A DNA stretch of 64,000 bases, taken from positions 34,223,504-34,287,503 of the forward strand of contig OZ037765.1 in assembly GCA_964035545.1 (NCBI GenBank). Direction: 5' to 3'. A program made the position numbers and the translations under genes. The notes beneath the pieces were generated by a model. The model saw only the letters and a program-made list of their open reading frames with translations, did not search any database and had not been told where the DNA came from. The first letter of the stretch is position 1; each line of letters begins with the position of its first letter. Shown here one piece after another: positions 4,018-58,348 of this stretch. The DNA is from Bugula neritina. Lineage: Eukaryota > Animalia > Bryozoa.

Positions 4018-7000
4018 ATGGGTCAAAGTGAATCTGTTCCTAAAGACGAATCAAGTTAGTAAATTATATAGATATAAATACTACCAGTTATAGCTGCAGA
4101 ATTTTTACATTATACGCTTTTATGAGTTACATGACATTCAGTTGCAGCACTAGAGAAATTGAGGTAGCCTAAGTTCTTTAATTCTCTTAAAAAGATTTGC
4201 ATTGGGGCGTGGTTAAAAATCTCACGAGAACATAACTCCATTTGTTACATTTCTGATGAATAAATACAAGCTTTTTTCAACTTTGTATTATATACTTTGC
4301 ACCTAACTTTGTGTTGACCACAACTGGGTGCATTATTGTATAATGTTATATACTGACTTATATTATATACTATAACTATTATACTGAAGCTTATATTATA
4401 ATACATCAAAGTATAATATATTGTTATACTGACATATATATTATATTATATCACAAATAAAGTGTTATTATTATTTTATATTATATTGTAGCTATTATAC
4501 TAACCTACATCATGTTACGTTACAATAATTGTAGTAACCTTAGTTAACTATTATAACATGCACATTTTACTGACCTATATTGCATTATATTACATTATAT
4601 TACACTAGAATACTATAACACATTATACTGTACAGAAGTATAAACAACATGGCTACCCTTTACCTGTCATCTGCTATAGTTGATGTCTGCGTCAGTTACA
4701 GGGATGAGTCATACTCTTATAGGTATAAACTGACAAAGTGGGCACAACTTGAATATACATTCAGATTTTATCACAGGATTTCAATTTAATTATCTGTAAT
4801 TTTAAGTAGTTAAAATGTAAAATGTTTATTGTGTAACTATTGCCAGTTATGGTTCTATGCATTGATGGTGTTTACAAACATTCTATTATTATAAACTTTT
4901 ATTTATAAAGTAGTGAATATCTTGTAGGGAAGTACAGTGTGTGGTTCAACACATCCAGTATAGATGGAGCTGATGATGAGTGGATGGAGAATGATATCAC
5001 ATCCTACACTATAGAAGAGATCAATGATATAAGTAGACATCATACAGTTATAACTCATGTTATACTGAAGCATGACATTCTTCCAAATATCAACAAACTG
5101 TTTCCCCATCTCACACATCTGAAGGTATCTGGAGTAGAGAGTGATGCTAACTGGACCAGGTATTATTTTATTATAATATGAAACTATATTAATAAGTGAG
5201 ATATTATCTTGTAGTAGAATGTGGAGTAATCTCCCTTCACAATAACACTAGCTTTAGTAACAATTTTTGTATTATTTACCTTATTTATTGTATTTCTATT
5301 TATGCTTCAATTTAAAGTGAGTTGGTGTCATTCAAACATAGTCTAAACATATAATAGTATAATAGTATGTGATAATTATGTAGAATTAAATATACTGTTA
5401 CACCTGTATATAATTATTATGTTACAGCATATCTTCACTGAAGAATCTTGAGGTATTGAATATGTCATTCAGTGACTTATCTAAAGGTCTACCAAACAAT
5501 ATATGCAGATCCTTACCATCATTGAGAGAATTGTACATGGAGGTCTGTCAACTTCCAACTCTACCAAACAGGTGTGTATTATATTATACATTATGAATTT
5601 ATCTGCACTATCTTTGTTGACTCAACTAGATTCTGTGTATATTATACGTCACAAGTCAATTATTGCATTCTATTCTATTAGATATGTACTCAGATAGAAA
5701 TGGTATGACAAATTCTCACTTATTACTCTAATAAATGTGGACAAGTAAATTATTTTGCAGTATAACTATATAACTATGTTGCATTAAATAGGTTATATTG
5801 AGAACAGGTGATAATACAGACCCTTTTCCAATGCCCCCCCCCCCCCCCCCCCCGGTACTCAATTTCAAGTTAGGAGTTGAGTCCTCTTCAACAGGGATTG
5901 AGTTAAACCATGTTTTAGAGAGAAAACTAATTACAACTTTAAAGTTTGACTGTTATTTAAAATCTCAACTATGCTATGGAATTGTTCTTACAGGAGATAG
6001 ATATTCTGGTATAGCACACATATTAGCAGTTCAAGAAATATTTTACAAACATTTCTTCATAATAAGTTTTGAAAAAAAGTAAATTTGAAAGCCTTTTCGT
6101 GATTTTGGTTATTGAGCAATGCTGAAGAGCAGTTGAGGTATGAATTCCTTTATTTATTTGTTGTGCTGGCTGTCACCACTTTGTTTAGATCTGTTAACCT
6201 TTCAATTCCTTGGAAAAGGGTCTACTGATATAAAATAAGCTATACTACTATTACATTGTTGAGTGAAATGTAGAGTGCTAATGATAATACCCAGGAGTTC
6301 AATAGACTTTGATGATTTTCTATACCCGTGTGTTATATGTTACAGCATATCTTCACTGAAGAATCTTGAGGTATTGGATATATCACATAACTACCTATTT
6401 GAAGCTCTACCTGACAATACATTCACATCCTTACTGTCACTGAGAAAGTTGTACATGATGGACTGTAACCTGCCAACTCTACCAAACAGGTGTGTATTGT
6501 TTAATTGTACATATATAATAATATAGAGTAGGAGAAACTCTACTAACTATACAATATTAATTCATGACTTGGCTGTTAAAATATTATTACTGGAGTGGTT
6601 TGTGCAGTACATGTGTACTTGATATTCAGGTAGATGACAACTCTCAATACTCTGTTAGTAAAAGTATATTTGATGTCATGTTTTTATGGGTTACATGCTG
6701 TGGTTATATTCTTACTAAAATATTATACAACATTTCATACCTGTATGTTATGTTACAGCATATCTTCACTGAAGAATCTTGAGGTATTAAATATATCATA
6801 TAATAACCTATCTGAAGGTTTACCTGACAATGTATTCACATCCTTACTATCATTGAGAGAGTTGAACATGGTGAGGTGTGAACTGCCAACTCTACCAAAC
6901 AGGTGTGTATTATATTAGCCAATCCAAAGATCAGCACCATGAAAGTCAGTCATATGTTGCTGCCTTTTTCTATCAAAACTAAATGCATAAACATTTTACT

Positions 7001-10000
7001 CACTAACATAGAGCCAAATTTTAACTGTATGTTTTTTGACATAATACACCCCAATATAGGGGGCAGGTTGAACTGCCCTGTGGGAAAGTTGAATCAGTGC
7101 GTTTATCCTATAATATAATTTGTTTTATCTATTTTGTAAGTTAAAAAATGACTTATTAAAAAGTAACAATAATAATCATTAAAAGAAATTAGAACAAATA
7201 ACAGAATTTCTGAATGTGATCTGTCATTGTAACCATTCAACATCTCAAAGTAGATACTTTAAAACCCAAGCAGCAGCAGCAGCAAGCTGGCAGGAAGCTC
7301 TTTTTGCAATTCATCCTTGAACAATGTATGCAGATATGAGATGGGGTCCTCTCATATGACATCAGAAAATACACAGTAGCATGGTTGAGCCTAACCAACG
7401 TCTTTCGTTGGCTGTTTGAAGGCTCTCAACTTGATGAATTACACTATCCTGCCTTGCTTTACCGTTATAGGTCATTGTCCAGCTTTGAAACTATGTTGAA
7501 AATATATTCTTGAACTTGACTGGTCTATTAAAACTTGAGAAGCTATGCAAGTTTTTATGAAAATGGCAAATTTTTAATTTGATCATTTTTATGCAAACAG
7601 TGTGAAAAAATCCTCTCTCACCTGAAAACTTCATTTCATACATTTCCATATGTTTGATAATGTTGTGAATTTATGCCGTTAAATCTCAATGTGTTATTGA
7701 GATTAGAGCATAAGCTGGTATATTGCGAGTGTAATATTCTATTTATCTGAAGCAAGATTTCATACCTGTATTTAATATGTTACAGCATATCTTCACTGAA
7801 GAATCTTGAGGTATTGAATATATTAGATAACTACCTATCTGAAGGTCTGCCTGACAATATATTCACATCCTTACTGTCATTGAGAATGTTGAGCATGGAG
7901 AACTGTACACTACCAACTCTACCAAACAGGTGTGTATTATATCATACATTATGAAGTTATCTGCACTATCTTTATTGAGTCAACTAGACTCTGTGTATAT
8001 TATACGTCACAAGTCAATTATTGTATTCTATTCTATTAGATATGTACTCAGATAGAAATGGTATGACAACTTCTCACTTATTACTCTAATAAATGTGGAC
8101 AACTCAATAGATCCCTTTCAGAGGTTCTCAAGATCTCCCTTACATTTAAGAGTTGTGTCCTCCCAAAAAGAAAATAGATTGAACAAAATAATCTTGAATT
8201 CCTTTTTGTGACTTTGGTTGCTGAGCAATGCTGAAGTGCCACTTCAGCATTGCTCAGTAATGAAAATCACAAAAAGGAATTCAAGTTTATTTTTTTCAAA
8301 ATTCTCTTGAAGAAATATCTTCAAAAAAAAATTTTCAACTGCTAATATGTGTGCATATACCAAAATATCCATCTCCTAAAAAAACAATTCTATAACATAA
8401 TTATAATTTTAAGTAGCAGCCAAATGTTAAATTTTGAATGAGTTTGCTCTTTATACAAAGGTTCAACCTACTGACTTTGGGAGGACACAACTCTTAAGTG
8501 TAAAAGAGATATCCGGGCACCTGAAAAGGGTCTATTATTTCAAATGAAATAAGTTATATTAAATTGAGTTACAAATATGTTACAATATTATGCAATGCTC
8601 ATATTGTTGAGCATAGAATGTACAGTAATATTAATAATAAATAGTATAGTTAAATTAACTTTGATTATTTTCTACCTGTATATTTTTATGTTACAGCATA
8701 TCTTCACTGAAGAATCTTGAGGTATTGAATATATCAGGTAATAACCTATCTGAAGGTCTACCTGACAATATATTCACATCCTTACTATCATTGAGAAAGT
8801 TGGGCATAAATAGTTGTAAACTGTCAACTCTACCAAACAGGTGTGTATCATTTAATTACATATATAATAATATAGAGTAGGAGAGACTCTACTAACCATA
8901 CAATATTTATTCATGACTTGGCTGTTAAAATATTATTATTGAAATGGTTTGTGCAGTACATGTGTACTTGATATTCAGGTAGAAGACAACTCTCAATACT
9001 CTGTTAGTAAAAGTAGATTTGATGTCATGTTTTTATGAGTTACATGCTGTGGTTATATTCTTACTGAAATATTGTACAACATTTCATACCTGTATGTTAT
9101 GTTACAGCATATCTCCACTGAAGAATCTTGAGGTATTGTATATGTCAGAGAATAACCTATCTGAAGGTCTACCTGACAATATACTCACATCCTTACTATC
9201 ATTGAGAGAGTTGAACATGAGGAACTGTAAACTGTCAACTCTACCAAACAGGTGTGTATTATATTACATTATGAAGTTATCTGCACTATCTACATCAGGC
9301 GCACTAAACGCTGTGTGTACGAGATTTCTTAAGGCAATTACTATATTGTATCAGATGTACACATATAGAAATGGTATGACAATTTCTCATTCATTACTCT
9401 GCTATATGTTGACAACTAAATTATTCCGCAGTGAAATATGTTATATTGAGACTAGGTATGAATATGTTGCAATGTAAAACTATACTAGAACATAAATGAG
9501 CTATTGAGTAAAATGTGGAGTATTAATACGTATTATAGCTAAATTGACTTTGATGATTTTCTACCTGTATTTTATAGCAGCATATCTTCACTGGAGAATC
9601 TTGAGGTATTGGATATATCAGATAATAACCTATCTGAAGGTCTACCTGACAATATATTCACATCCTTACTATCATTGAGAGAGTTGAACATGAAGAACTG
9701 TGAACTGTCAACTCTACCAAACAGGTGTGTATTATATTACATTATGAAGTTATCTGCACTATCTACATCAGGCGCACCAAACGCTGTGTGTACGAGATTT
9801 CTTAAGACAATTACTATATTGTATCAGATGTACACATATAGAAATGGTATGACAATTTCTCATTCATTACTCTGCTATATGTTGACAGCTAAATTATTCT
9901 GCAGTGAAATATGTTATATTGAGACTAGGTATGAATATGTTGCAATGTAAAACTATACTAGAACATAGATGAGCTATTGAGTAAAATGTGGAGTATTAAT

Positions 10001-13000
10001 ACGTATTATAGCTAAATTGACTTTGATGATTTTCTACCTGTATATATGTTATGTTACAGCATATCTTCACTGAAGAATCTTGAGGTATTGGATATATCAG
10101 AGAATAAGCTATGTGAAGGTCTACCTGACAATATATTCACATCCTTACTATCATTGAGAGAGTTGAAAATGGGTAGCTGTAAACTGTCAACTCTACCAAA
10201 CAGGTGTGTATTACATAATAGTGTAGAAAGATAATTATTGTAATAAATATAAATTATAAATATATTTTTACATGTGTTCATAAAACTCTAACAGATTTGC
10301 TACACTGAGATATATTATAATATTATACTGAGATACATTATAATGTTATACTGAGATATATTATAATACTATATATACTGAGATCTATTATCATGCTATA
10401 CTGAAATATATTATAATATTATACTGAGATATATTGTAATATTATAGGGGTAACAGGGGCACAACGGTCATAGGGGTAGAAAAAGCCGGCGTAAATTTTT
10501 TAGGATGTCGTTGAAGCCTTATAAATTTTTACACTCAAAGGCAAGAAGCCTAAATTTTACTAATATTGTTGCCATTGCTTGTCTCTACAATGCTTAACTA
10601 GTATAACAGCAAACACTGAAATAAATTTTCCTTGAGGCACATTTATTTTCAATTTGGCCACATGGGGCACAATGGGCCACCTGATTATTGCACCCTGATC
10701 ACTGTTATTAGTTTGTTTGCCCAAAAAGTTGGTTGAACTGTTACTAAAATCTATAAATATAGCCATTTCTGACCTTTTTGTAAAATATCAAAGACATCAT
10801 GGTAAGACTACAAACCTACAAGTTGAAGCTCCCCTAATACATACATCTGGTGAGGTTGAAGCTTTGCCATTTTATACATAATACAAAACACTCTGCTGTT
10901 GCTACTTGCTACTAGTAGATAGTCATGATAATCATTATATATTACACCATTGAGGGAATATACATGCATTTGACTGAAATAAATTGTGATTTGCTCATTC
11001 GCTCTCCCCTTTCCGTTCCGTACTCCAGTCACAAACCTCAGCCATGCATGCACCTTAGCTACAGTTCATTGAAAAAAGTTCACTCAGAATTTTTGTAGTA
11101 CATTTTAGTAAAGTTTCTTTTTAATAAACGTTGCTCTGAAGTGAAAATAACAAAACATTTTTAGTTCGAAACAGTAATGATAATGGCACTGCAGAATTGA
11201 GTGACGTGCGTTTGATTTTGCCTTCCTCTGCTATCCGTAGTGGCACAAACCGTACAGCTAAAACATGAATTTTGCTGTAGATCTGAAAGAGTATCTTTAT
11301 TTATTTGTATTATTAAATAAATAAAGATCAGATACAACAAAATACGCAAAACTTCAATATATTTGTTGTGTCCCACCCAGTGGCCCATTGTACCCCGGTA
11401 CCGGGGCACAATGAGCCAATTTTTTCAACATGAAAATTTCATTATTCTGAAAGTTGTGAAAGAGATAGAAACAAGAAACTGGTACCTGTAATAGATAACA
11501 GATGTAGCATTAAGACTAGAGATTATTGAACTAGTAACTTGAAAAACAGACCAATGAGAGCAACAAATGCAAAATTCGGCCGGTTGTGCCCCCCCCCTTT
11601 ACCCCTACTGAGATATAGTATAATGTTATACTGAGGTATATTATAACGTTATACTGAGATATAATATAATATTATACTGAGATATAATATAATGTTATAC
11701 TGAGATATATTATAATGTTATACTGAGATATATTATAATATTATACTGAGGTATATTATAATGTTATATACTGAGATATATTATAATGTTATATACTGAG
11801 ATATATTATAATGTTATACTGAGATATATTATAATGTTATACTGAGATATATTATAATAGTATACTGAGATATAATATAATGTTATACTGAGATATAATA
11901 TAATGTTATACTGAGATATAATATAATATTATACTGAGATATATTATAATAGTATAGTGAGATATATTGTAATGTTATACTGAGATATAATATAATATTA
12001 TACTGCGATATATTGTAATAGTATAGTGAGATATATTACAATGTTATACTGAGATATAATATAATATTATACTGAGATATAATATAATGTTATACTGAGA
12101 TATATTATAATGTTATACTGAGATATAATATAATGTTATACTGAGATATATTATAATATTATACTGAGATATAATATAATATTATACTGAGATGTATTGT
12201 AATAGTATAGTGAGACATATTATAAGGGTAATCAATAAACAGTTACTGTGTGATGCATTGTATAATTAACCTGCCTTATTCCATCAAATACCAGGGAGTG
12301 TAACTCCAAGCATCTATGAAATATAATTACTAAACAATAGAAATTGCAGAGAATCTTATATATTTACTACAGTGGTATTATATTACAAAGTATATTATGG
12401 AATTTTATTATTTATATGTTTATACAAAAGCCTTTTCAAAACAACAATTGTATTTTTGTCTGCGTACAGATTCTACAGAAGTTAGAGGAACTGGACATAT
12501 CGTCAAGTAACTTCACCAATTTACCATCTCCTGTGTACACACTGAGTAGTCTGCAAGAACTGAATATATCTTCCAATTACTCTTTGACATCCTTAGATTC
12601 TGAGATATTACAGCTAACTCAACTTCGTACACTGTATGTTAGAAATTGTGATGCTCTCACCTCTCCTCCACTGGAAGTATGTCAGAGAGGAGTAGATGCT
12701 GTGAAACAATACTACACAGACTTGGCTAAAGGAGTTGGTAGAAGTCTGCCATTTGCTACTATAGCTGTGCTGGGTAATACGATGGCTGGGAAGACCAGTC
12801 TAATCAGAACATTACAGAATGCTGACAGAAAGAGAGTTCTGACCGACAGAGGACCAGATGCTGTGAGAGATGAGGCAACAAAGGTGTTTAATGTTGAAGA
12901 GGTGGAGGTGGATAGTACAGTACTCCGTCTCATTGATATGGGAGGCCAGGAAGTCTATCATATCACTTATCAACTAACACTGAGACAAAATTGCATTCCA

Positions 13001-16000
13001 GTCATAGTAGTCAACATGGAACAGTACGAAGAGGTTTCAAATGAATCAACACACAGAGAAGCTGTTAAAAGATTAGCCTTTAATTACATGTCTCACCTCT
13101 ACCTGGCTAACCCAACCCTGGGTGCTCCAAAACTTATCTTCACACATAAAGATAAGTTTCAAAATGTGGAATTCCAAGAGCTTCGAACGAACTTTCTAGA
13201 CACTTCCAATCAGCTGTGTGAGGAGATGATTAAAGAAGAGAAAGCATTGGGTGGAGAATTTGCTCAAATCAAACATTTTAGTGAATCAACTAAAGGAGTC
13301 TTTCTTGGTGAAGACATTTATGAGGTGGGGAAAGATGATAAGTATGAAGTGTTTGACCTGATCAGGGAGTCTTTTCTTCAAAGCAGTCACCATTTTGTGA
13401 AACCATTACCTTTGGTCTGGGAGGAAGTAAATGAAAAAGTGCTGTCTATTCCCTCTGTGTACAGCACCTTTGATGAGATACTGAAATACGTGCAAACCGA
13501 ACTTCAACAAATCGAATCGAGTCAGCTGGACATAATCCTCACATACATGCATGACTGCGGCAAAGTCTTGTGGTATAAAGATATCAGCTCTCTCCGGCCA
13601 TACATATTCCACAAGATTTCACAAGTCACCAAACTTCTCTGCGTCTTGTATCATCATGATCCTGACATTTGGCAGAGTAGAGTTGACAAGTTCCAGCCAT
13701 ATTTTTCAGAGGATGGGATGCTTGTTGAAAAAGAAGACTTTGAAAGATTTGTTAATCATTTCACTAAGACGGGTTTAATGATGCAATGCCTTCTCACTCA
13801 TCTGGTTAAACAAGAAACACCATTTACTGGTCTGGAAGATGTAAAAGTTGCTGTTTGCTTGCTCCTCACATTCCGTTTGTTATATGGTCCTTTACCTGCT
13901 GATTTCAAAGAGCCCTGTTTTATTGTTCCTCAGTTTGCTAATGACCTCTTTGATACCTCTTACTCTTCGCCAAAGAATATGCTTCTTCGAGTTGAAACCC
14001 AATTCAAGGGCTTAGCGCTACCACAATATGTCTACCAGCAGATGAATGTTGGTTTGCTAGAGTTGTTTTCCGATGAATTTGCTGTGATTAAAGTGAAGAA
14101 AAATGGCGCCAATGTCTATCAAGATGGAATCTACACACAGCTGGTACACGACTACAAATCTAGAAAAGTGTCACTCCACGTGTCATCTAATGCTGCCAAC
14201 ATCAGCAGAATGTGGGAGAGACTCATCACCACCAACAACAACATCCTTAGACATGTTCTAGAAACTTGGAAAGCGAGTAGACCAGTCACTACATGCTACT
14301 GTGCTCACTGTCTTCTGCTAGGACTTCCTTGTCCTAATAAAGTGCTGAATCCTCTGTGGTGCAGTCTTCGCTCCTTGAAACATTCCACACCAACAAGTCC
14401 CAGACTGTGCAGCGGATCTTCAACAACCCTGTGTGGTGATGAGGAGATACCCAGTGCTCTTCTGTATCCATGTACGTGTAATTTTATTTCAAAAAATAGT
14501 TGATTTCTCTGTGGTTTATTTATCAACTTCTATTATTGGAATAATTTTTGTGGTAACTGACAGTTTTTCATTCTCCAGGCAGTCCTCTTTCTCCAGAAGA
14601 AGCTGATAACATAAAAAAATGTGTCAACAAACTGAGATCTGCAAGAGAAGAAACTGCTTCAACTGTCCCTGGTAGGATCAGTTGTCTATCATAAACTGTT
14701 ACTGTTAGAAGTAACATCCTTTGCCTGAGCTCAGTCATATGTAAACAGCAAAGGACAAAAACTCATGACCCTCAGTTATATAGGCTCTCTGCAAAAGCTC
14801 ACACACCTTCAATTGTTTTAATTTATTTGTATATTTATTGACTGAAAAACACTCAAGTACTGATTCGATTCATTGTTTATAGTCCTTTTGATACTTAGTA
14901 TCTGTTACTTAGCACTGAATATATCTCTTTTTCGTTTTATTTTAGAGATGGGTAGAGAAAAGAATTGGTTAACTCAAACTACCTCAGTCCTTGTTGAAAA
15001 CGACAACATCAGTGAATGCTCTGATGTTGAAGAGGAAGGATATGCTGACTTCACTAAAGATGACCTTGAACCTTTCATATCTCTAGTTGAGGGTATGCAG
15101 CTGAAACCTACCAACAATGAACCAGTGAAACAGCTGTTTGACAACGACCGACAGGTAAAACAAGTTTTTTGATTTCTTATTAGATCATTGATTAATATTT
15201 TTTTGATATTATGGCTCTTCATCTAATTTCTATTACATTTCATACTTGATTTGATTAATCCATTTTCTGTTGTCTACTTTTAGTAATATAAAATTGATTG
15301 GTTTGCAGGTTTATGCGATGAGTGACCCTGTTAGAGGTCGTGTCATGATCATAAACAATGAGAGATTCTTTAGAGATGATGGCAGTGAACTGACTGAGGC
15401 AACCCGAGATGGTTCATACATCGACTATGTTAACATCAAAACTCTGTTGAAAGACATGGGATTTGTTGTAGCCAATGAAGATGATCCTCTGTTTGACCTG
15501 AGTAAACAGGTTACTGTATCAATTTCTTATCTTTTCCTGTAGTTTATTCTCCCCAGGCTGTAGCTAGCTGTGATATAGCCTATAGCAAGTATTTTTACTG
15601 CAGAACCGAGGCATTGTATTCCAACAAATCTACAATAATATATTGTTAAATTGTATTCAAATTATTAGTTTTTCTCAGTTCTGAGTTTTAGTTTAGAAAC
15701 AGCAGCACTACTTAATAGTTCATCTTTGTTATAAATGTTTTAGTGTAACTTTGAAGCAGCTTTTGCTCGTGCGTAGAAACATTTACTTATCCAAACTTGA
15801 TTTTACACACCATTATATACTTTTATTTTGCCAGGAGATATTATCAGAAGTGAGGAAGGAGACCACCGACAAAGACCACAAAGATCTTGGCATGTTCATT
15901 CTAGTCATCATGTCACACGGAACTTCTGGAAACATCTTCTATGACAAATACTGTAAACCTGTCAACTTGTCAGAAGTCAAAGATTTACTCTCAGCTAGTA

Positions 16001-17043
16001 ACTTTCTTGCCATGAGAGGAAAACCCAAACTCATCATCTTCCATGCTTGTTCTGGCAGTGAGTAATGCAGAGTTGTTCGTCATGTTACTAGAACTAGCAG
16101 TTAGATTGCATAGTTTCCTATAACTATAACATTAATTAATTTAAGGAATCATTATTTTCAAGATGCCTTATGTTATTGGAGTATGCCTATGAGGAAGTGA
16201 GCTACACCTCATAACTGGAATCCAATAAACAGTGCTGTGTAATAGAGTTCTGCTTGTGAATCCAGTCCTAACTTATTACTTACCAACAAATCACAGAGTC
16301 TACATTATATGTATTTCATATACAGGCAGAGCTGACTTTGGTAATGCTGCACAGTCGCAAAGCCCAGACACCGTCTCACCACCAACGCCAACCCCTCTAC
16401 CCTCATCTTCTGCAACAGCTGGGAGTGAGTCTTCTGCAGGTCAAAATGTGTCTCCAAATATTCACTTTGATAAATTCACTCACCTAGATGCTGATGACTT
16501 CTACATTGTGAAGCCAAGTACAGAAAGTTAGTGAGAAGAAAATTATATTTGAGTTGACTAAAACTTTTATTGGTGCAAATTAAAATATTTGTTGCATGTA
16601 AATAAAACTATAGTAAGAATTAAATAGAAAGTATTTCACATATCAATTTGGCCTTCATATTTAACTGCTCATTTTCATGTGTTGCAGCTTACAAGGCTGG
16701 TAGGAATGAGAATTATGGTACCTGGTTTATCAGAATACTGGTGGCTACATTCTACTGACACAGCTGTCACAGAGATGTTAGTGAGCTGTTTAGGATAGTA
16801 AGTACTTCAGTATTACTCTTTGCATGATACTGTGGAGCGTGTTGAGTCATCAGCTTTATATTTCTCTTATATTTATACTTACAGATACAAGACAGAGTTA
16901 GACGAGTCAGTATTGCATATTGTAAGAAGACAGGAGATGAAGCAGCTGGTGGTAATGTACCTAATTGTCAGGAATGTACTTTCACTCACCTCAGAAAACT
17001 TTTCTTTTTTCCAAAGTTTCATGGCAGACAACTCCCACAGTGA
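4018..17043 (+). CDS. Gene A: myristoylated LRR-ROC-COR-caspase (ROCO family, MFHAS1-like core with fused C-terminal caspase); ~1540 codons, one in-frame TGA at 16756-16758
   Basis: Manually spliced GT-AG exons with consistent phases: 4018-4054, 4928-5159, LRR cassettes 5428-5571, 6346-6489, 6759-6902, 7786-7929, 8697-8840, 9108-9251, 9581-9724, 10060-10203, [putative micro-exon 12243-12249], 12470-14471, 14579-14671, 14946-15154, 15309-15509, 15835-16057, 16326-16526, 16688-16797, 16885-17043. Motifs: MGQSES, LxxLxLxxN/C repeats, [54 protein letters not shown]. The exon structure is mirrored in gene B. Confidence 0.85.
5818..6223. mobile_element. MITE related to 8106-8536
   Basis: AGACCCTTTTCCAA..TTGGAAAAGGGTCT termini; internal GAGCAATGCTGAAG shared. 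Confidence 0.65.
8106..8536. mobile_element. Palindromic MITE in LRR intron
   Basis: TIR AATAGATCCCTTTCAG.. / ..CTGAAAAGGGTCTATT with ~65-bp imperfect arms and an internal hairpin (~8195-8290). A related element lies at ~5818-6223. Confidence 0.7.
10303..12225. repeat. ~23-bp satellite (ACTGAGATATATTATAATGTTAT)n, split by the 10447-11605 insertion
   Basis: Direct reading; the same satellite sits at the equivalent position in gene B. Confidence 0.93.
10447..11605. mobile_element. Non-autonomous TIR element (GGGGTAA..TTACCCC, TA TSD; Tc1/mariner-pogo-like)
   Basis: Inserted at a TA inside the 23-bp satellite; internal GGGGCACAATGGGCCA-type motifs. Confidence 0.8.
12470..14471 (+). CDS. Gene A large exon: last LRRs + LRR C-cap (SPPLEVCQRG) + ROC GTPase + COR
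   Basis: ORF 12344-14503. P-loop [10 protein letters not shown]3 DMGGQEVY, G4 THKD, COR-type [13 protein letters not shown], terminal CYCAHC. Acceptor tacag|ATT, donor CCAT|gtacgt. Confidence 0.92.
15309..17043 (+). CDS. Gene A caspase (peptidase C14) domain exons
   Basis: YAMSDPVRGRVMIINN..TRDGSYID; LVIMSHG; RGKPKLIIFHACSG; DADDFYI; GRNENYGTWFI; RKLFFFP. TGA at 16756. Confidence 0.9.
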
Positions 17044-20494: not shown

Positions 20495-20824
20495 ATGTGT
20501 CAGTGTGGTGTCACAATGTGTCAGTATGGTGTCACAATGTGTCAGTATGATGTCACAATGTGTCAGTATGATGTCACAGTAATCAGTATGGTGTCACAAT
20601 GTGTCAGTATGGTGTCTCACCTAATAAGTAGAGTGTCACAGTAGAGTGTCACAGTAGAGTGTCACAGTAGAGTGTCACAGTAGAGTGTCACAGTAGAGTG
20701 TCACAGTAGAGTGTCACAGTAGAGTGTCACAGTGGAGTGTCGCAGTAGAGTGTCGCAATAGGGTGTCGCGGTAGAGTGTCGCGATAGAGTGTCACAGTAG
20801 AGTGTCACAGTAGAGTGTCACAGT
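20495..20824. repeat. 21-bp (ATGTGTCAGTATGGTGTCACA) then 13-bp (CAGTAGAGTGTCA) tandem repeats in NOL11 intron
   Basis: Direct reading. Confidence 0.9.
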
Positions 20825-42771: not shown

Positions 42772-42860
<89 letters not shown>

Positions 42861-42938
42861 CTTCCTGTTAACATAAAAAAACAAGTAGTATATTTTACAA
42901 AAGAAAAAGAATGTACACTCTCAGGCCGACCGGCCTAC

Positions 42939-43031
<93 letters not shown>

Positions 43032-49000: not shown

Positions 49001-52000
49001 GGACAAAAGCATCAAAGACACGACGGCTGAGGAGGTTCATGGCACACCCGGAGTCTAGCAGGAAAGTGACGGGCTTTCCGGTCGCTTTTCCTACTAAGAA
49101 ATAGCTGTCTCCGCGCGGTTGTACCCTTACTCCCCCTGCGTGCTCAATCCCAGCCGGGTAGGGCCGTGCTCGTCCGGCCCCCGGTTTGCGTGGCCTGCGG
49201 TGACAAGGAGTTCGTCTCGGAGGCGTGACCTGTTCCCCTCCGATGTCCGGATGGACCTCGCCAGCCGTTTTTACCTCTGGTAGCCGGTCGAAGCGGTTAG
49301 TGAGTGGCAGGGTAAACGGGTCCGGTCGCCACACTGGTCGACTGATCCAATGAGGTGCCTGCCACTCGTGAGGGGCATGACGCAATGTCCGTACGGATGA
49401 CCTGCATTTTCCGCCTCTGGAATCCTTCATTTTCGGCCCGCGGGGTTTGAAGGTATCTGCGGGCTGTGAGAGTTTAACCCCTTTCCAGACTGTAGGAGAT
49501 GTCCGTGTTCGCCCATTTCCAACACAAGGCAGTTGGCCTTGGAGTCGCTACCCTCGGCCTCAAAGGTCCTTGAGTGGGCTCTGTTGGGTTGGCATGGGCT
49601 GAGACTGCCACCAACTTTTCCAGCAACTTTTCCGGTCAACCTCCGCCCTTAGGGGAGAGATGGTAGTGGCAGCAACTACTTAAATAGGAGTGTCTGGTCC
49701 AGGTTCCACGGTGATTTGTGGGCCCAGTGTAGTTGTTTGGCCAAGAGATAGGCCTCACCTTCGTGCAGGGCATCCTCTATTGTGGTCACCCTTCTTGCTT
49801 GAAGCTGGTGGTGGAGACTCAAGTCATTGAGGGACTGCACGAAGGCGTCATAAGTGTAACGCTTCCGGTGTACTTCCGGCAAGTCGCTATTCGCGATCTG
49901 TGCCAGTCTCTTCACCGTGGTAGCATGGTCTTGGAGGGGGATGCGCACTTGCTCACCTTCCATGTGTTGAGCTGTTCTTTCTGCCATGGTGTATTCTATT
50001 GTTGTCTAGATCTTTGCATTGCCACAAGTCAGAAGATCCCACCGCTGCCACCACTGTTATAATTTTGCAATTATAGTGCAAATGGGTATCTAATTGTGCA
50101 ACGAGATTACAGTCATCCTCGATGAATACCACGATTAATAGAATTGAATATAAGCTTTATTTACAATATAACAATACATCCAGTATCCCAACTATCACAA
50201 ACATCTATCACAAACATCTATCTCTTACTACTCTATTACTCTGACTGGTACTAACTACAAAAACATGAGTCAGGCGGCTCTCTGCGCCGCTGGGGGTCTC
50301 ACGTGACTCTCAGCTAATTGGCTGAGTTACACGTGGACGAAATACACTACGCTGGCCACTACAAAGGTATAAAATTTGTTATAATATAAAATTATATCCA
50401 TATAAGTTAGATACTCTCTTTTAGCTGAGTGTAATGTGAAGCTATTATACATTTCTCTTTCTCTTTGAAATAACCCAAGTTTTAGTAGCAACTGCTGTAT
50501 TGTTTATCTGACTCTTAGTGGTCAGATCAAGAATTAAATAAAACTAAATTATTCTTATTCAATAATAATACTTTTATATAGTAGGTCAACTTACTACCTT
50601 TTCGTTATGTTACAGCATATCTTCACTGGAGAATCTTGAGGTATTGAATATATCATGTAATAACCTATCTGAAGGTTTACCTGACAATATATTCACATCC
50701 TTGCTATCATTGAGAGAGTTGTACATGAGGTACTGTGGACTGTCAACTCTACCAAACAGGTGTGTATTATATTATAGTGTAGAATAATACTGTAATAAAT
50801 ACAATATATAAACATATTATTAAATAATTGTGTAGAAGCTTCTAATCTTTTGTGATGTACATAAATTGACTTGTATGAACTAATTACATTATATAAATCA
50901 TTATAGACAATATATGTGATGTCATGTCTTTACTATTCTATTCTATCAGATGTACTCAGCAAGACATGGTGTGACAACTTGGAACTTTTTACTCTGATAA
51001 ATATTGGTATATAAAGTTGCTATAATATTATGAAATGTTCATAGGTGACCTCTTATGATACTGTTGAGTAGAATGTACAGTATATAGTTCAATTACCTTT
51101 GATGATTTTATATCTGTTTATTTTATGTTACAGCATATCTTCACTGAAGAATCTTGAGGTATTGAATATATCAGGGAATAACCTATCTGAAGGTTTACCT
51201 GACAATATATTCACATCCTTGCTATCATTGAGAGAGTTGTACATGAGTCACTGTGGACTGTCAACTCTACCAAACAGGTGTGTATTATATTATAGTGTAG
51301 AATAATACTGTAATAAATACAATATATGAACATATGATTAAATAATTGTGTAGAAGCTTCTAATCTTTTGTGATGTACATAAATTGACTTGTATCAACTA
51401 ATTACACTATATAAATCATTATACATAATATATGTGATGTCATGTCTTTACTGTTCTATTCTATCAGATGTACTCAGCAAGACATGGTGTGATAACTTGG
51501 AACTTTTTACTCTGATAAATATTGGTATATAAAGTTGCTATAACATTATGAAATGCTCATAGGTGACCTCTTATGATACTGTTGAGTAGAATGTACAGTA
51601 TATAGTTCAATTACCTTTCATGATTTTCTACCTGCATGTTATGTTACAGCATATCTTCACTGAAGACTCTTGAGGGATTGAATATATCAAATAATAACCT
51701 ATCTGAAGGTTTACCTGACAATATATTCACATCCTTACTATCATTGAGAGAGTTGTACATGACGAACTGTAAACTGTCAACTCTACCAAACAGGTGTGTA
51801 TTATATTATAGTGTAGAATGATACTGTAATATATAAAATATATAAACATAAGATCAATATAATTGTGTAGAAACCTATGGTAGAAACTTAAGACACACAG
51901 GATAGTTAAGGGCAACCTTTTAGCTGCAACTGTCTTGCTGAGGTTTGCATTGTAATCATATAAAAATTCAGTGCCAGTAAAATAAAATCTCACCTAATTG

Positions 52001-55000
52001 TGCTAGAGTCAAAATTTAAAAACTATGTTGTAAATCTTCTTTTTCTCCAGTGCAACTTTTTTGGAAATTTCAATTTTCATTTTTTTTGCAAAGTTATAGA
52101 CAAAAACTGTCCAATTTTGGCCAATTTTGCCAAAAAAGCTGACTTTTCAGTGCCAGTAAAATATCTCAGCAGCAAAAGATGATATCTGAATAGAAATTGC
52201 ACTGCTGGAATCCTGCGATATTTCTCCAGTGCAGCTTTTTTTCTTTTTCCAATAACTCTGCTAGATTGCTCATAAATTGGTGATTTATACACTGAAAATG
52301 CCATATTTTTTCATGAGAAACTAGCAGCGCGCAGCACTTCACGCTTCAATGAGCACGTAGGGATGAGAAGATATTGGCGCGTACATATTAATTATAGGCT
52401 TGCTAGCTGGCAGGCTATAATGAAAAGCTCGCTTTGTGTTATGTTTATGTAGCACCCATAATGGAATGTTGATAGATAACGCAGCCCTAATGAAGGTTGC
52501 TGCTTATTGGTTGTAGTTTAATCTTAGGCTAAACAAATGCAAGTAGGCAAGACGCATGCCACCCGCAGAGCAAAATTATTCAAGAACCTGAACTACATTT
52601 TGAGAGAAATTTATGTTATTCTTAGTGAGGATGCCCTAACTATCCTGTGCATATTATTTTACCATAATCAGAGTGACTTATAATATTATTATAATTATGT
52701 CTATTATGAGATATATTATAATGTTATACTGAGATATATCATAATGTTATACTGAGATATATTATAATGTTATACGGAGATATATTATAATATTATTATA
52801 CTGAGATATAATATTATAATATTATACTGAGATATATTATAATATTATACTGAGATATAATATAATGTTATACTGAGGTATATTATAATGTTACACTGAG
52901 ATATATTGTAATGTTATACTGAGATATAATCTACTGTTATACTGAGATATAATATAATGTTATACTGAGATATAATATAATATTATACTGAGATATATTA
53001 TAATGTTATACTGAGGTATATTATAATGTTATACTGAGATATACTATAATGTTATGCTGAGTTATATTATAATATTATACTGAGATATATTATATAATAC
53101 TATACTGAGATACAATATAATGTTATACTCAGATATATTATAATGTTATACTGAGATATATTGTAATGTTGTACTGAGATATATTATAATGTCATACTGA
53201 GATATATTATAATGTTATACTGAGATATATTATAATGTTGTAATGATATATATTATAAAATTATACTGAGATATATTATAATGTTATACTGAGATATATT
53301 ATTATAATAGTAGTCAATCCACAGTTACTGTGTGATGCAATGCATCGTTTGCCTGCTCCAATTTGTATCAAACACCAGGGAGTGTAACTCCTAACAGCTA
53401 TAAAATACAATTACTAAACTACAAAAATTGTCGAGAATTTTATATATTTACTACAGTGGTATTATCTTACAACGTATATTATGGAATTTTAATATTGATA
53501 TGTTTATACAAAAGCTTTTTTAAAACAACAATTGTATTTTTGTCAGCATACAGATTCTACAGAAGTTAAAGCTACTGGACATATCGTCAAGTAACTTCAC
53601 CAATTTACCATCTCCTGTGTACACATTGAGTAGTCTGCAAGAACTGAATATATCCTTCAATTCCTCCCTGACATCCTTAGATCCTGAGATACTACAGCTA
53701 ACTCAACTTCGTTCACTGGATGTTAGACATTGTGATGCTCTCACCTCTCCTCCACCAGAAGTATGTGAGAGAGGAGAAGATGTTGTGAGACAATACTACA
53801 CAGACTTGGCTAAAGGTGCTGGTAGAAGTCTTCCATTTGCTACTATAGCTGTGCTGGGTAACACTATGGCTGGGAAGACCAGTCTGATCAGAACATTACA
53901 GAATGCTGACAGAAAGAGAGTTCTGACCAACAGAGGGCCAGATGCTGTGAGAGATGAGACAACAAAGGTGTTTAATGTTGAAGAGGTGGAGGTGGATGGT
54001 ACAGTACTCCGTGTCATTGATATGGGAGGCCAGGAGGTCTACCATATCACCTATCAACTGACACTGAAACAGAACTGTATTCCAGTCATAGTAGTCAACA
54101 TGGAACAGTATGATGAGATTTCAAATAAATCAACACACAGAGAAGCTGTTAGAAGATTAGCCTTTGATTACATGTCTCACCTCTACCTGGCTAACCCAAC
54201 TCTGGGTGCTCCAAAACTTATCTTCACACATAAAGATAAGTTTCAAACTGCAGAGTTTCAGAAGCTTCGAAAGAACTTTCTAGATACTTCAAATCAACTG
54301 TGTGAGAAGATGATTAGCGAAGAGAAAGTATTGGGTGGAGAATTTGCTCAAATCAAACATTTTAGTGAATCAACTGAAGGAGTCTTTTCTGGTGAGGACA
54401 TTTATGAGGTGGGGGAAGATGATCAGTATGAAGTGTTTGACCTGATCAAGGAGTCTCTTCTTCAAAGCAGTCAACATTTCGTGAAACCATTACCTTTGGT
54501 CTGGGAGGAAGTAAATGAAAAAGTGCTGTCTTTTTCCTCTGTGTACAGCACTTTTGATGAAATACTGAAGTACGTGCAAACCGAACTTCAACAAATTGAG
54601 TCAAGTCAGCTGGACATAATCCTCACATACATGCATGACTGCGGCAAAGTCTTGTGGTATAAAGATATCAAGTCTCTCGGGCTATACATATTCCACAAGA
54701 TTTCAGAAGTTACCAAACTTCTCTGTGTCCTGTATCATCATGATCCTAACATCTGGCAGAGTAGAGTTAACAAGTTCCAGCTGTGCTATTCACAGGATGG
54801 GATGCCTGTTGAGAAGCAGGACTTTGAGGAATCTGTTAATCATTTCACAAACACTGGTTTGATGATGCAATCTCTTCTTGTCTATTTGATTCAAAATGAA
54901 ACAGTATTCCACAGTTCTGAGAATGTTGAAGTTGCTATCTGCTTGCTCAAGACATTCCGTTTGCTGCATGGTCCAATACATAGCAAGTCTGAAGACCCAT

Positions 55001-58000
55001 GGTTCATTGTACCTCAGTTTGCTAAGAACTACTACAGCACTTCTTACTTACCACCCAAAGACATGCTGCTTCATGTTGAGACACAATTCAATGGTCTAGC
55101 CCTGCCACACTATGTCTACCACCAAATGACAGTTGGCTTGTTGGAGTTGTTTCCCGGTGACTGTCCCAGGATAAAAGTGAGAAGAAATGGCGCCAATGTC
55201 TATCAAGATGGTATCTACACACAGCTGGTACACGACTACAAATCTAGAAAAATGTCACTCTACGTATCATCTAATGCTGCCAACATCAGCAGAATGTGGG
55301 AGAGACTCATCACCAACAACAACAACATCCTTAAACATGTTCTAAAAACTTGGCCAGCAAGTAGAGCTGTCACTACATGCTACTGTGCTCACTGTCTTCT
55401 GCTAGGACTTTCTTGTCCTAAGAAGGTGCAAAGACCTCCATGGTGTCTTCGTTCTTTACAACATTCTACACCAAGTTCCAGACTGTGTAGTGGAACTTCA
55501 ACAACTCTGTGTGGTGATGAGGAGATCCCAAGTGCTCTGCTCTACCCATGTATGTTTATTTGCATTATGGTGCGGTGCCTGTAAAATTATATTTTACTGC
55601 AATTCACCACATGTGTGCATTTATTTGGAAAGGAATTATTCATTGATATAACTAGGATAATAGTGTGATTTCACGACACCCGACTGTATTTACAAGCAAT
55701 TCATTGTTTCAGGTGAACCACTGTCTGAACGAGAAGCTGATAAGTTGGAGAAGTTTGTGAAGGAACTGGATGTTCGAAGAGCTCAAGAAAGATCAGCTCA
55801 TTCTGGTGAATACAAAGTGACCAGTTTTTACAAACTTGTGTTCTTTAAAAGTTTTACTTTATTGAAAGATCTTCTCACAAGAAATTCCTGCATTGCATCT
55901 GAATACCAAACTGCTAGCTATCATTTATTATGTTTTTTACTTATTCCTTTTGTAGCTAAGTATTGTAGTCGGTTTATACTTTATAGCCGCCGACAGTAGC
56001 CAATCAGATCTCCTGACCACCGCAATAACAGCCAATGACGATCTCAGTGATCTCTCTGATGATGATGAGAATCTGTACCCTGATGGAAAGGAAGTTGAAG
56101 ATATGAAGTTTATAAGACTCAGACTGAATCCCACCAGTAACCCAAAGATAGGACAGCTGTTCTCAAACACTGACAAGGTGATCACTTCTAATGTCTATGT
56201 GCTTTATTCTTGCCAGTTGTTTATTTCAGCAGTAACAAATATTTCTCTGTTACATCCAGGTGTTTACTATGACTAGAAAAAGAGGAAGAGCTCTGATAAT
56301 AAACAACATGAACTTTGATAAGAGACCAAATTTGTGTAGGAAAGGTTCAGATGTAGATGTTGAGAATATGTCTGCCATGTTGAAATCTCTCAAGTTTGAT
56401 GTCGTGACACACACAGACCTGAAGGCTGAGGTATGTTTTGCTGCTGCTTTACTTATAAAAATGGAACTTTTTGTTAGTTTAAAAAAGCATCCATATACAG
56501 TATTTTACCATCCGATACTTTCTAGGAAATGCTGTCTGCTGTTCAATATGAGGTGGAAAAAGAGGAACACGAAGATCTGGGATGTCATGTGTTGGTTATC
56601 ATGACTCATGGAGGGCTGAACAATCACATCTATGGTACAGATCTGAAACGAGTCAAACTAACAGATGTGTATGACCTTCTGACCCCTTTGAACTTCCCAA
56701 GAATGGCTGGCAAACCAAAGGTTGTTATACTGGAAGTCTGTAGTGGAGGTAATCAGTCTATACAACATTTGTGGTTACTTCAGAGTTGTGTTCTCTTGAC
56801 TGTTAGTAAATGATTAAGTGTGTCTATATTGCTGTGTATTTATGCTATTCACTAATTTATATGTGGGTATTTAAGACTAAAGCTGATAACTGCTGAAGTA
56901 GCGTAGGGTCAAGTGTGACGTGACGTGCTAGAAAACCCGTTTAGGCCAAAAAAAAGTTTTTATGCGTCTAACATGCTGAGAGAGAATTCCGGCAAGCTTG
57001 TGCGTGTTTGATCTAATTGGCTTGTTATAATTTAGTGAGCACACTGTTTTTTATCTTAATTCAAAGTTTAGCTTTTAGCGAACTGAATTAAAACAGTTTC
57101 ATATATATCAAAAGTCGATGACGTAGAACAAATGTCTGAAGGTGAGCAGTAAAGTTCAAAGCTAATATCATTAGCTAATAAATTTCTGCACTGGCAACGC
57201 ACACATTGTGGCCCTACGCTAGAGTCTTCATAGCTTTATGAAATAGAGTACATAAGTACATAAGTACATAACGTGACAAATACTAAGCATGCAACCTAAC
57301 TTTCCAAGTGCTACTACCTAACTGTGCTCTGCTGATGCACTCTGCTAATGATCTTGCATCATTAGCTCTATCCCAAGCATTAGCTCTATCTCAAGCATTA
57401 GCTCCATCCCAAAGCATTAGCTCTATTCCAAGCATTAGCTCCATCCCAAAGCATTAGCTCTATTCCAAGCATTAGCTCCAGCTAGTGATGCACTCTGCTA
57501 ATGACCTCTTCGATTTTCCACAGATCGAGATAGCGCAACAATGTATTAGGTATTAGCTGAGTAGCAGAGTTAGCGTAGGAGTTGTCCTTTCACCACAATA
57601 TACCTAATTTCAGAGTTATCTATATGTTTTTCTATTTGACATTATGTATTTATACTCATCATTCCAAATAAATATAAAACTATGTGATCTGTATTACAGA
57701 GAGAAGTGATTATGGCCAAAGAGGTATAGACAGATTTGATATCGGAGAATCACCGAAGGAGGGGGAGAGTATCTCACCTCCACTTGCTAAAGTTCCTGGA
57801 GACAAAGATGCTGAGGCTATGAATAGACTGAACTATGATGACCTGCTAGTAGTGAAATCTAGCATGGAGTGTAAGTAAAGCACATGTAATAGAGTATTAG
57901 GTTACACCGATGCCATACATACACTGGTGTTATTAATAATTGTAGGATAGTTCACATTATTGACTCTACTTGTAGCATTCATAGCAAAGGTTCACCCTGT

Positions 58001-58348
58001 GTATGGATCTCTAATGATTAGAGCTCTTGTATCTTCCATGTATAAACATGCCTGTCACCATGACCTCTACACTATATTCAAACAGGTGAGTATATTGTTA
58101 CTATGTTAGAGGCTTTTGGAGGCGTGTCATAAATAGGTTATTTAGAATAATCTGGTACAGAATAGTCAGATTTCACTGTTGAGTTGCTAAACATTCTTCA
58201 GGTACAGACTAAAGTGAGAAAAGTCTGCTTAGATAAAAATCTAGAGAGTGGAGGACAGCTGGTTGTAGTCTGGGATACTCTCACTCATATGAGAAAACTT
58301 TACCTGTTTCCTGGGTTTAATGGCTGCAAAAGAGAAGATGACTCTTAG
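28058..58348 (+). CDS. Gene B: myristoylated LRR-ROC-COR-caspase paralogue, apparently intact (~1454 aa)
   Basis: Exons 28058-28076, 28445-28673, LRR cassettes 28894-29037, 31976-32119, 32568-32711, 42047-42190, 50616-50759, 51134-51277, 51650-51793, [putative micro-exon 53325-53331], 53554-55549, 55713-55805, 55987-56177, 56260-56430, 56526-56748, 57700-57870, 57976-58085, 58202-58348 (TAG). Same intron phases as gene A. Motifs [59 protein letters not shown]. Confidence 0.87.
29399..31960. mobile_element. Non-autonomous DNA transposon, CAC..GTG termini, 2-bp TSD (TA); CACTA/EnSpm(CMC)-like, copy 1
   Basis: TIR CACAGTTAGTTTAAGGTCA / TGACCTTAAACCAACTGTG. It interrupts the conserved intron end ctacctgTA|tgttatgttacag, 15 nt before LRR exon 31976. 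Confidence 0.85.
34826..35974 (-). pseudogene. Ubiquitin-specific protease (peptidase C19)-like spliced gene fragments inside the MULE-like element
   Basis: Minus-strand exon 35974-35885 encodes [20 protein letters not shown] (Cys box). ~35520-35480 encodes [13 protein letters not shown] (QxD box). ORF 35107-35310 has KCHFC..LLPVPL and ORF 34826-35011 has [12 protein letters not shown]. No clear GHY His box. Confidence 0.75.
36401..40785 (-). mobile_element. Intact Ty3/Gypsy LTR retrotransposon (Mag-like)
   Basis: Identical 152-bp TG..CA LTRs (36401-36552, 40634-40785), 5-bp TSD CTTAT, PBS TGGTGGCCAGTACG (tRNA-Ile-like 3' end), PPT AGAAAGGGAGG. Confidence 0.97.
36733..40551 (-). CDS. Gag-pol polyprotein (2x CCHC knuckle, protease LDTGA, RT HMDD, RNase H, integrase HHCC/DDE)
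   Basis: Uninterrupted ORF 36733-40566; first ATG (MAKF) at 40551; domain order PR-RT-RH-IN. Confidence 0.96.
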   Translation of the reverse strand: MAKFNPPKEFDFDPSGWAEWFARWSRYRTLSKLNQEEEQLQVDSFLYCMGNKSESIFNGLALSDEDVKNYQKVSEAFQKYFSPRKYVIYERARFFRRCQQQGETVEQYVRSLNDIADRCDFSNRSEQMRDRIVVGITDTNCSREMQKMNVEDLTEEVAINMARQFEQVDKNIKDLTESHTQGSTSSTSVDAVSKFSSSGSHTNKSHKHSSKSNSTRQTNNSTPCGRCGYVNHTRGTCPAKDCKCKRCGKLGHYAKMCKSKPASQVQQVEEEVDSVFLGEIAESNVGVWTKTIVVDKLDFPVQFKLDTGADVSILPQRLCSNVPLVKTKKQFLGPGNTKIPVVGCFNAKLSVGSITHTETIYVVNQTKALLSRNACVKLGLISCKCDIDSVTNVTDNSVFCREFPKLFSGLGKMNHTVGIELRSECKPFAINTPRSVPYPLLSSVKQELSDMVAKGVISPVSEPTDWCAPMVVVPKANRKVRICVDYTELNKVVRREVHPMAHVESSLAKLGNGNFFTVLDANSGFYQIPLSPKAKMLTTFLSPFGRFAFNRLPFGLSSSPELYCKIVSQVLEGLDGVVCHMDDVCIWGKSQEEHDSRVRAVLRRMVDAGMTLNVEKCKFSRSSIRFLGHVISSSGIRANPEAIQGIESFATPTCVKDVRSFLGMANQLSKFSTRLGELSAPLRELLHKNTPWIWDVAQKQAFCDIKKELQRSVELAPYSPHRETVIHTDASQCSIGAALFQYQDNGELRLVCAASRALSETEKRYATIEQEALAVVWACEKFRDYIVGLRVVIKTDHKPLVPLLNDIELDKNPARIQRFRMRLMRFQYHMEHISGKKNVIADALSRSVGPISEADVMFMEEVELFAVSALHNTATSPRLKELKVQQENDEVLSRVLQYVRSGWPTYLPSHEILLRPYFECRSRLSTIEDVLVLDSRIVIPHAERLAVLDKIHSGHLGITKCRSRAAQSVWWPNMSQQIAEMVKKCESCRKESNVQQYSLLRSEFPSRPWEKLGSDLFYFDSKWFLLVVDYYSRFIEVALLEDLTSSKVILHLKSIFARHGVPEVLISDNGVQYASEEFKSFARKFGFTHVTSSPKHPQGNGAAERAVQTVKNILKKGQDPYLGLMAYRSSPLENGVSPAELLMGRKLRTTVPSLPSVLAPKQPNVERVKQKEAHARAQSKDTFDLRHRVVVPPSLSPGDRVHVRDLNRDAEVVSTSPGRPRSIVVKSTNGVPLRRNVTNLVPLQTTELSDDNNVARKSSFGRTIKPRQILDL
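42393..50363 (-). mobile_element. Degenerate Ty3/Gypsy LTR retrotransposon (Gypsy-2) with nested CAC..GTG element
   Basis: Diverged LTRs 42393-42673 and 50055-50363; TSD CAGG/AAGG; PBS TGGTGGCAGCGGTGGGATC (tRNA-Leu-like); PPT GGAGGGGGCAG. Frameshifted gag, protease (LLDSG), RT/RNase H (47146-48117, YLDD) and truncated integrase (HKQAH..C, 43749-44012). Confidence 0.93.
44548..47128. mobile_element. Same CAC..GTG element, copy 2, inverted relative to copy 1, TSD TG, inserted in the Gypsy-2 RNase H region
   Basis: Near-identical reverse complement of 29399-31960 (ORF 30597-30800+ recurs as 45727-45930-). Flanked TG..TG. Confidence 0.88.
51896..52649. mobile_element. MITE, CACAGGATAG..CTATCCTGTG, 2-bp TSD CA (CACTA/EnSpm-like)
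   Basis: TIRs and TSD visible; a diverged inverted relative lies at 59213-59828. Confidence 0.75.
52707..53307. repeat. ~23-bp satellite (ACTGAGATATATTATAATGTTAT)n in the gene B intron before the ROC exon
   Basis: Direct reading. Confidence 0.93.
53554..55549 (+). CDS. Gene B large exon: last LRRs + ROC GTPase + COR
   Basis: ORF 53617-55584, collinear with the gene A exon (two codons shorter), same motifs. Confidence 0.92.
56260..58348 (+). CDS. Gene B caspase (peptidase C14) domain exons
   Basis: [22 protein letters not shown]; LVIMTHG; [14 protein letters not shown]; DDLLVV; YGSLMIRAL; RKLYLFPG. Confidence 0.9.

Follow-up and report, generated by a model that had tools for sequence, protein, structure and literature searches.

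The 64,000-nucleotide (nt) window analysed here, an AT-rich stretch of contig OZ037765.1 of the bryozoan Bugula neritina, carries on its forward strand two paralogous genes, A and B, each built to encode a leucine-rich repeat (LRR) solenoid, a Roc GTPase, a COR domain and a caspase. Splice-site models give gene A 18 exons and 1541 codons, from its start ATG at 4018 to 17043, and gene B 17 exons, all with GT-AG introns, from 28058 to the final base of its stop codon at 58348; intron phases are the same in both. In each, the Roc-COR exon ends at a phase-1 GT donor (14471 and 55549) and leads through a 93-nt phase 1-1 exon and an acidic linker exon into five caspase exons. A first, sequence-only reading of the window had proposed this in-frame path, with identical intron phases and with the motifs SHG/THG and HACSG/EVCSG, and the models bear it out. 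It had also implied that both paralogues are intact, which we reject, since gene A has a TG in place of a splice acceptor and a private TGA; gene B is the only one of the two with an open frame (1454 amino acids, no internal stop). The two genes comprise the following features.

28058-58348, forward strand: gene B, intact LRR-Roc-COR-caspase gene with a B-type caspase (splice model; RNA contigs compared on 53300-58500)
28058-28076 and 28445-28673, forward strand: gene B exons 1 and 2, N-terminus MGQSES, exon 2 being the 229-nt N-cap
28894-51793, forward strand: seven 144-nt phase 2-2 LRR cassette exons of gene B, starting at 28894, 31976, 32568, 42047, 50616, 51134 and 51650 (predicted splicing)
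53547-55549, forward strand: gene B Roc-COR exon, 2003 nt, with three LRRs, Roc and COR
55713-55805, forward strand: gene B 93-nt helix exon, phase 1-1
55987-56177, forward strand: gene B acidic linker exon with a conserved SDxSD motif
56260-56430, 56526-56748 (THG, EVCSG), 57700-57870, 57976-58085 and 58202-58348, forward strand: gene B caspase exons
4018-17043, forward strand: gene A, LRR-Roc-COR-caspase gene with an A-type caspase and two lesions
4018-4054 and 4928-5159, forward strand: gene A exons 1 and 2, N-terminus MGQSES and an N-cap region without Pfam match
5428-10203, forward strand: eight 144-nt phase 2-2 LRR cassette exons of gene A, two 24-residue repeats each, starting at 5428, 6346, 6759, 7786, 8697, 9108, 9581 and 10060
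12461-12462, forward strand: gene A lesion 1, TG at the Roc-COR exon acceptor (AG in paralogues)
12463-14471, forward strand: gene A Roc-COR exon, phase 2-1, with three LRRs, Roc, COR-A and COR-B
14579-14671 and 14946-15154, forward strand: gene A 93-nt helix exon and acidic linker exon
15309-15509, 15835-16057 (SHG, HACSG), 16326-16526, 16688-16797 and 16885-17043, forward strand: gene A caspase exons
16756-16758, forward strand: gene A lesion 2, a premature stop (TGA, codon 1476) within the small subunit, private to gene A

The domains are recognizable by several methods. Pfam matches the LRRs and Roc above or near cut-off (Roc PF08477 at 30-32 bits against a cut-off of 27 in both genes), COR-A weakly (E 0.01), and Peptidase_C14 (PF00656) on the caspase exons of both genes. 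The Roc of gene B has the motifs G1 GNTMAGKT, G2 DETTKVF, G3 DMGG and G4 THKD, with COR directly after it, as in ROCO proteins, and a CxHC...C...C cluster lies in the C-terminal part of the exon. The COR assignment is considered real because the AlphaFold model of this large exon (mean predicted local distance difference test score 91) finds LRRK1 (E 1.6e-23), C. tepidum Roco and LRRK2 as its best Foldseek matches, besides the isolated COR 3dpt; judged on this model, 53547-55549 is a genuine Roc-COR fold. The His-Cys exon of gene B matches CED-3 and caspase-8 among PDB sequences. Both caspase subunits and the His-Cys dyad are present, the small subunit being truncated in gene A. In a homologue from the bryozoan Watersipora, a helix in the model of the region from COR-B to the end is followed by a disordered linker and by a caspase fold that resembles caspase-3, caspase-9 and caspase-8; no death-fold domain appears in it. 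Just upstream of the main ATG, both genes have a 9-codon open reading frame (3967-3996 and 28007-28036) that could damp their translation.

Several lines of evidence indicate that sensor, GTPase and protease form one polypeptide, as the sequence-only reading had supposed. Genome-wide, a same-strand caspase His-Cys exon follows the Roc-COR exon at 69 of 69 loci (median distance 1.6 kb, within 5 kb in 64), where chance would give about 0.002 per locus. The COR exon runs without a stop to a phase-1 GT at all 30 loci examined, and in 25 of these a matching phase-1 exon of 87-96 nt lies 100-190 nt beyond it. Annotated models agree: at least nine Watersipora RefSeq proteins (for example, XP_067947674.1 and XP_067948342.1), which RefSeq names MFHAS1 homologues as a similarity label, combine Roc-COR and caspase in one chain, the Bugula GenBank model EB796_016200 joins COR to the start of the caspase, and XP_002614028.1 of the amphioxus B. 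floridae has LRR, Roc, COR and caspase together. Four Roc-COR-caspases without LRR matches occur in ENA assemblies, two of them confirmed as single open frames that need no splicing. These single-frame genes (L032:6001-11874 and L033:6001-10590) carry QACRG and sit on large, animal-like contigs.

Contigs from four probable RNA runs, compared over 53300-58500, cover the exons of gene B and mostly skip its introns. They make the joints 56177-56260, 56430-56526, 56748-57700, 57870-57976 and 58085-58202, and one contig joins 55805 to the acidic linker exon. These joints lead from the 93-nt exon to the last caspase exon; the joint 55549-55713 between COR and the 93-nt exon is not among the joints listed. 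Other points also weigh against a single chain: no RNA contig in this interval covers the span from Roc to caspase, the runs are RNA by guess, and most contigs derive from paralogues. Because of the unlisted joint and the paralogous origin of most contigs, expression of gene B itself is likely rather than proven. Taken together, the LRR-Roc-COR-caspase architecture is real and we hold it very probable that it is translated as one chain. Bacterial contamination or recent transfer was also considered and rejected, since the genes are spliced, lie among animal transposons and have a metazoan-type caspase; a Bugula neritina locus with 87-88% DNA identity to the assembly speaks against contamination as well. 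The close protein relatives that carry a name all belong to two bryozoans, Watersipora subatra and Bugula neritina.

Counting the family, as had been suggested, yields at least 69 Roc-COR-caspase loci in the 216-Mb assembly, with about eight more Roc-COR exons from a divergent subfamily (some 70-77 in total). Both window genes and nearly all of 30 loci keep intact G motifs, and Roc is under purifying selection, with a nonsynonymous divergence (dN) of 0.041 against a synonymous divergence (dS) of 0.169 (dN/dS of about 0.24). Genes A and B are 83% identical over the Roc-COR exon and 23-47% identical over the linker and caspase exons, and a tree of the first caspase exon from 27 loci (L019, L020 and L030, with no caspase exon in range, were excluded) separates types A and B into starred clades, with about two changes per site between them. 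By contrast, a tree built on Roc-COR exon DNA (first 1260 nt) rejects the A group (approximately unbiased test, AU, p 0.0016) as well as the B group (AU p 0.0004). Over the first 360 codons in the C1 cluster, identity between caspase types equals that within types, and the nearest pairs in the 5' third cross the types (L017, type B, with L015, type A; L002, type B, with L014, type A). Since the Roc-side tree rejects the caspase types, the identities are equal and the nearest pairs are cross-type, sensor and switch parts have been exchanged: recombination or gene conversion continues to shuffle LRR-Roc modules between old caspase types, of which there are at least two.

The LRR cassettes vary mainly at positions of the concave face, where, across five duplicate pairs, the proportion of nonsynonymous differences (pN) is 0.17 and that of synonymous differences (pS) is 0.076 (Fisher p 0.023); the gene A cassettes at 9108 and 9581 differ by eight nonsynonymous and no synonymous changes. 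Against this stands the bootstrap interval of pN/pS over all pairs, 0.6-6.5, which includes 1 and makes the signal modest, so that favoured amino-acid change at the concave face is suggestive but not conclusive. Selection on the LRRs was judged on this nonsynonymous-versus-synonymous test only; a comparison of exon and intron divergence between cassettes was dropped as biased, the pairs having been chosen for near-identical introns. The region upstream of the genes together with their first exon occurs again at 876-1863 (including a third MGQ start at 1531), 24405-25036 and 26109-26705, as leftovers of tandem duplication.

The design, for which the sequence-only reading knew of no characterized protein, is not categorically new. 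Bacterial LRR-AP-GTPase(Roc)-COR-effector proteins with the identical domain order have been catalogued, with caspase as one of at least 24 effectors, rapidly evolving N-terminal LRRs, several paralogues per genome and a predicted role against invaders (PMC8195603). Unlike these prokaryotic proteins, known by prediction only, the bryozoan genes are spliced, have exon-encoded LRR cassettes and number some 70-77 copies, and their effector is a metazoan-type p20/p10 caspase in 69 of 69 cases, differing by caspase type and not by effector class. A Runella Roc-COR-CHAT protease has been proven biochemically to cleave a partner gasdermin, known from its operon, after Leu and to kill cells (10.1101/2021.06.07.447441); it shares the fusion of Roc-COR to a His-Cys caspase-like protease but is bacterial and CHAT-type, whereas the protease here is animal and of family C14A. 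In amphioxus, LRR-caspase hybrid models were proposed in 2008 to couple pathogen recognition directly to apoptosis, Roc-COR going unnamed in passages of that paper (PMC2575513). XP_002614028.1 shares the full LRR-Roc-COR-caspase chain and, unlike the window genes, has QACRG. Since its Roc-COR groups with caspase-less amphioxus ROCOs in a quick tree with long branches and no outgroup, the amphioxus fusion is perhaps independent, and repeated origin of animal Roc-COR-caspase fusions is possible. No Roc-plus-C14 cluster was found in the ESM Atlas, all leads being below 0.9, and no paper on the bryozoan or animal family turned up in the literature searched, the coverage of which was incomplete.

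Other ROCO proteins share parts of the plan. Brown algal ROCOs form an expanded family in which tandem phase-2 LRR cassette exons shuffle and diversify, and three have a non-caspase peptidase (PMC11378527); their exons are 72 nt with one repeat, against 144 nt with two repeats here, and most lack an effector. MFHAS1/MASL1, LRRK1/2, DAPK1 and C. tepidum Roco have the same Roc-COR fold and G motifs, but they are single-copy and carry no effector, a kinase or a death domain in place of the caspase. With NLR inflammasomes, Apaf-1 and initiator caspases the proteins would share a repeat sensor, a nucleotide switch and a proximity-activated caspase, while differing in their Roc GTPase instead of a STAND ATPase, their N-terminal LRRs, their lack of CARD, DED or PYD and a protease that is fused rather than recruited. 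Membership of the NLR/STAND group was rejected on the basis of the Roc switch and N-terminal LRRs, in place of NACHT or NB-ARC with C-terminal LRRs. A relative, P0131 (1675 amino acids), has the order HEPN-LRR-Roc-COR-CARD-CARD, a recruit-a-caspase version of the design.

Watersipora and amphioxus models also begin with MGxxxS, a myristoylation consensus that MGQSES of genes A and B fits. The intact proteins are most likely intracellular, membrane-near and probably myristoylated one-piece immune or cell-death receptors. We consider an immune or cell-death sensor role likely, and activation by Roc-COR-controlled proximity somewhat favoured. A possible mechanism would begin with an LRR solenoid of interchangeable 144-nt cassettes, the variable concave face of which would bind a foreign or danger ligand. 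Initiator caspases are activated by dimerization (PMC11121540), and C. tepidum Roco forms a dimer without nucleotide or with GDP but a monomer with GTP, with a hinge at the LRR-Roc linker (PMC5714945, PMC11052575). Following the latter, a resting, GTP-loaded and monomeric Roc would be shifted by ligand towards a GDP-bound or empty dimer, or into clusters; following the former, the paired caspases, on tethers that consist of the helix and the disordered acidic linker (about 90 residues), would then turn on without a CARD or DED adaptor. Self-processing would follow, and then cutting of a downstream substrate, perhaps an effector caspase or a gasdermin. Candidate substrates are suggested by three first exons that match gasdermin above Pfam cut-off (G000:C2:4312189-4312395, 2048552-2048743 and 4286293-4286505). 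The linker has no death-fold, CARD or DED prodomain by Pfam on the linker exons, and it is disordered in the Watersipora homologue model, for which reasons a death-fold adaptor there was rejected; its SDxSD-acidic motif, common to A type, B type and Watersipora, may be a site of cleavage or regulation.

Which way the switch turns is a guess, because GTP monomerizes C. tepidum Roco, which weighs against the sequence-only proposal in its simple form: the reading of one chain with sensor, GTPase and protease has good anatomical support and is functionally plausible, but activation cannot simply be equated with dimer formation. A GTP-loaded monomer that is off and a ligand-stabilized dimer or cluster that is on would be the simplest fit. 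The Runella protease cut gasdermin in buffer without added nucleotide, GTP going unmentioned (10.1101/2021.06.07.447441), which agrees with such a GTP-off cycle but is weak evidence. Overall, a family of one-piece sensor-caspase receptors is the explanation that we prefer, and we regard it as fairly probable.

The most serious alternative is that the chain is real but many B-type members are pseudo-proteases or scaffolds, cFLIP-like or decoys for pathogen caspase inhibitors, with a Roc-COR that does not switch by dimerization. The active sites, for which full motifs were read in loci L001-L030 within flanks of 1.5 kb, bear directly on it. Several features weigh on its side and against an active caspase: the QACxG pentapeptide is missing from both window genes; the equivalent of Gln283 is His in gene A and Glu in gene B; that of Arg341 is Arg in gene A and Val in gene B, which thus lacks two of the three Asp-pocket residues. 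The Arg341 place also varies between Arg and Ile in translated RNA variants of expressed B-type paralogues, EVCSG or ETCSG motifs occur, and truncated copies such as gene A arise. An acidic residue two positions before the Cys recalls the Arg-specific paracaspases and metacaspases. Watersipora relatives carry QACSG or QACGG, with Lys at the Arg341 place in two models. In mouse caspase-12, a missing Arg341 predicts an inactive enzyme, but clan CD enzymes alter their preference for the residue before the cut (P1) through these same loops (PMC11121540). Moreover, the catalytic His and Cys, together with the Arg179 equivalent, are kept at every readable locus, and B-type caspase exons are 82-100% identical across copies. 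We rate the pseudo-protease explanation as unlikely. Because the Cys motifs are not QACxG and gene B has no Arg341 equivalent, Asp-specific caspase activity cannot be assumed; as the pocket residues differ by type, Asp-specific cleavage seems plausible for the A type and doubtful for the B type, which has probably changed its P1 preference.

A different function for the one-piece receptors would be colony self/non-self recognition or programmed zooid turnover (polypide regression) instead of defence against microbes. Bryozoans are colonial, fuse with or reject neighbours and recycle polypides, so polymorphic LRRs joined to a death protease would suit such roles, as would expression in all four RNA runs compared. 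A family of dozens of scattered copies that turn over by birth and death is more like one driven by pathogens than like a single allorecognition locus, however, the proteins lack a signal peptide or membrane span, and the same design exists in solitary amphioxus and in bacteria, all of which makes this function rather improbable.

The best reading of gene A is that it duplicates L016, the next gene downstream in its cluster, and was disabled recently; the two share 98.7% identity over 3.95 kb. The acceptor of its Roc-COR exon is TG, where gene B and nearly all other loci, including L016, have AG; the closest downstream AGs would shift the frame, and cryptic in-frame AGs 72-111 nt upstream might bypass the lesion. 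At 16756-16758, gene A has TGA where 11 other copies of the A-type caspase have AGA, with loss of the final 66 codons of the small subunit, a part that includes the strand at the dimer interface of caspases in general. Each lesion is a single-base A-to-T difference, as an assembly error could produce, but two such lesions, independent of each other, in the same member of a recently duplicated pair, within a contiguous assembly and with a normal codon in the 11 other copies, make it quite improbable that both genes are intact. Least credible of all is that two distinct genes in tight linkage encode ROCO and caspase or that the caspase exons are mostly spliced out, a reading that can draw on the unlisted COR-to-93-nt joint and on Watersipora models that end after COR (P0023, P0025 and P0034) but that we reject, given the complete linkage, the open COR exon end with its conserved phase-1 donor, the phase-1 exon that usually follows, the single-chain RefSeq models and a caspase without a start of its own.

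Transposon insertions have spread the LRR cassette exons of gene B apart, and the surroundings of both genes hold further elements.

36401-40786, reverse strand: Ty3/gypsy-type long terminal repeat (LTR) retrotransposon in a gene B LRR intron, its 153-bp LTRs identical, flanked by a 5-bp target duplication and carrying one open 1282-codon gag-pol frame; to judge from these features, a very recent insertion
33072-41950: larger hAT-like insert around this retrotransposon, bounded by terminal inverted repeats and, apparently, an 8-bp target duplication; no transposase frame seen in it
29398-31960 and 44548-47129: pair of oppositely oriented non-coding elements inside gene B, each 2.6 kb long with terminal inverted repeats and 97% identical to the other; an older gypsy element is interrupted by the second
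42383-50363: degenerate gypsy element in the gene B LRR region, LTRs 83% alike, with pieces of reverse transcriptase, RNase H and integrase in several frames
19000-24400, forward strand: pieces resembling exons, perhaps from an unrelated gene that lies between genes A and B, no Pfam match for the three pieces compared, with a 60-bp tandem array at about 21650-22060
11600-12220, 17720-17880 and 60800-62400: AT-rich minisatellites, the open frames at 60782-62374 being artefacts of one of them

An exon-wise search of the genome with a prefilter gave one weak NACHT hit and no NB-ARC hit; given this type of search, scarcity of NLR and Apaf-1 receptors is hinted at, not shown. A bolder proposal, which we consider doubtful, is that cheilostomes have largely replaced these receptors with recombining, GTP-gated, adaptor-free sensor-caspases, in which shuffled LRR cassettes joined to caspase modules of different specificity, including non-Asp ones, would fire gasdermin-type death as an animal counterpart of the bacterial Roc-COR-protease/gasdermin system. 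If the one-piece reading is true, the family would be a class of animal innate receptors in which a Roc-COR GTPase replaces the STAND ATPase and brings its own caspase attached. The fused, dimerization-dependent protease would report the on-state of Roc-COR, which bears on the question of nucleotide and oligomer state in the LRRK2 field, and the non-canonical S1 pockets bear on the evolution of caspase specificity.

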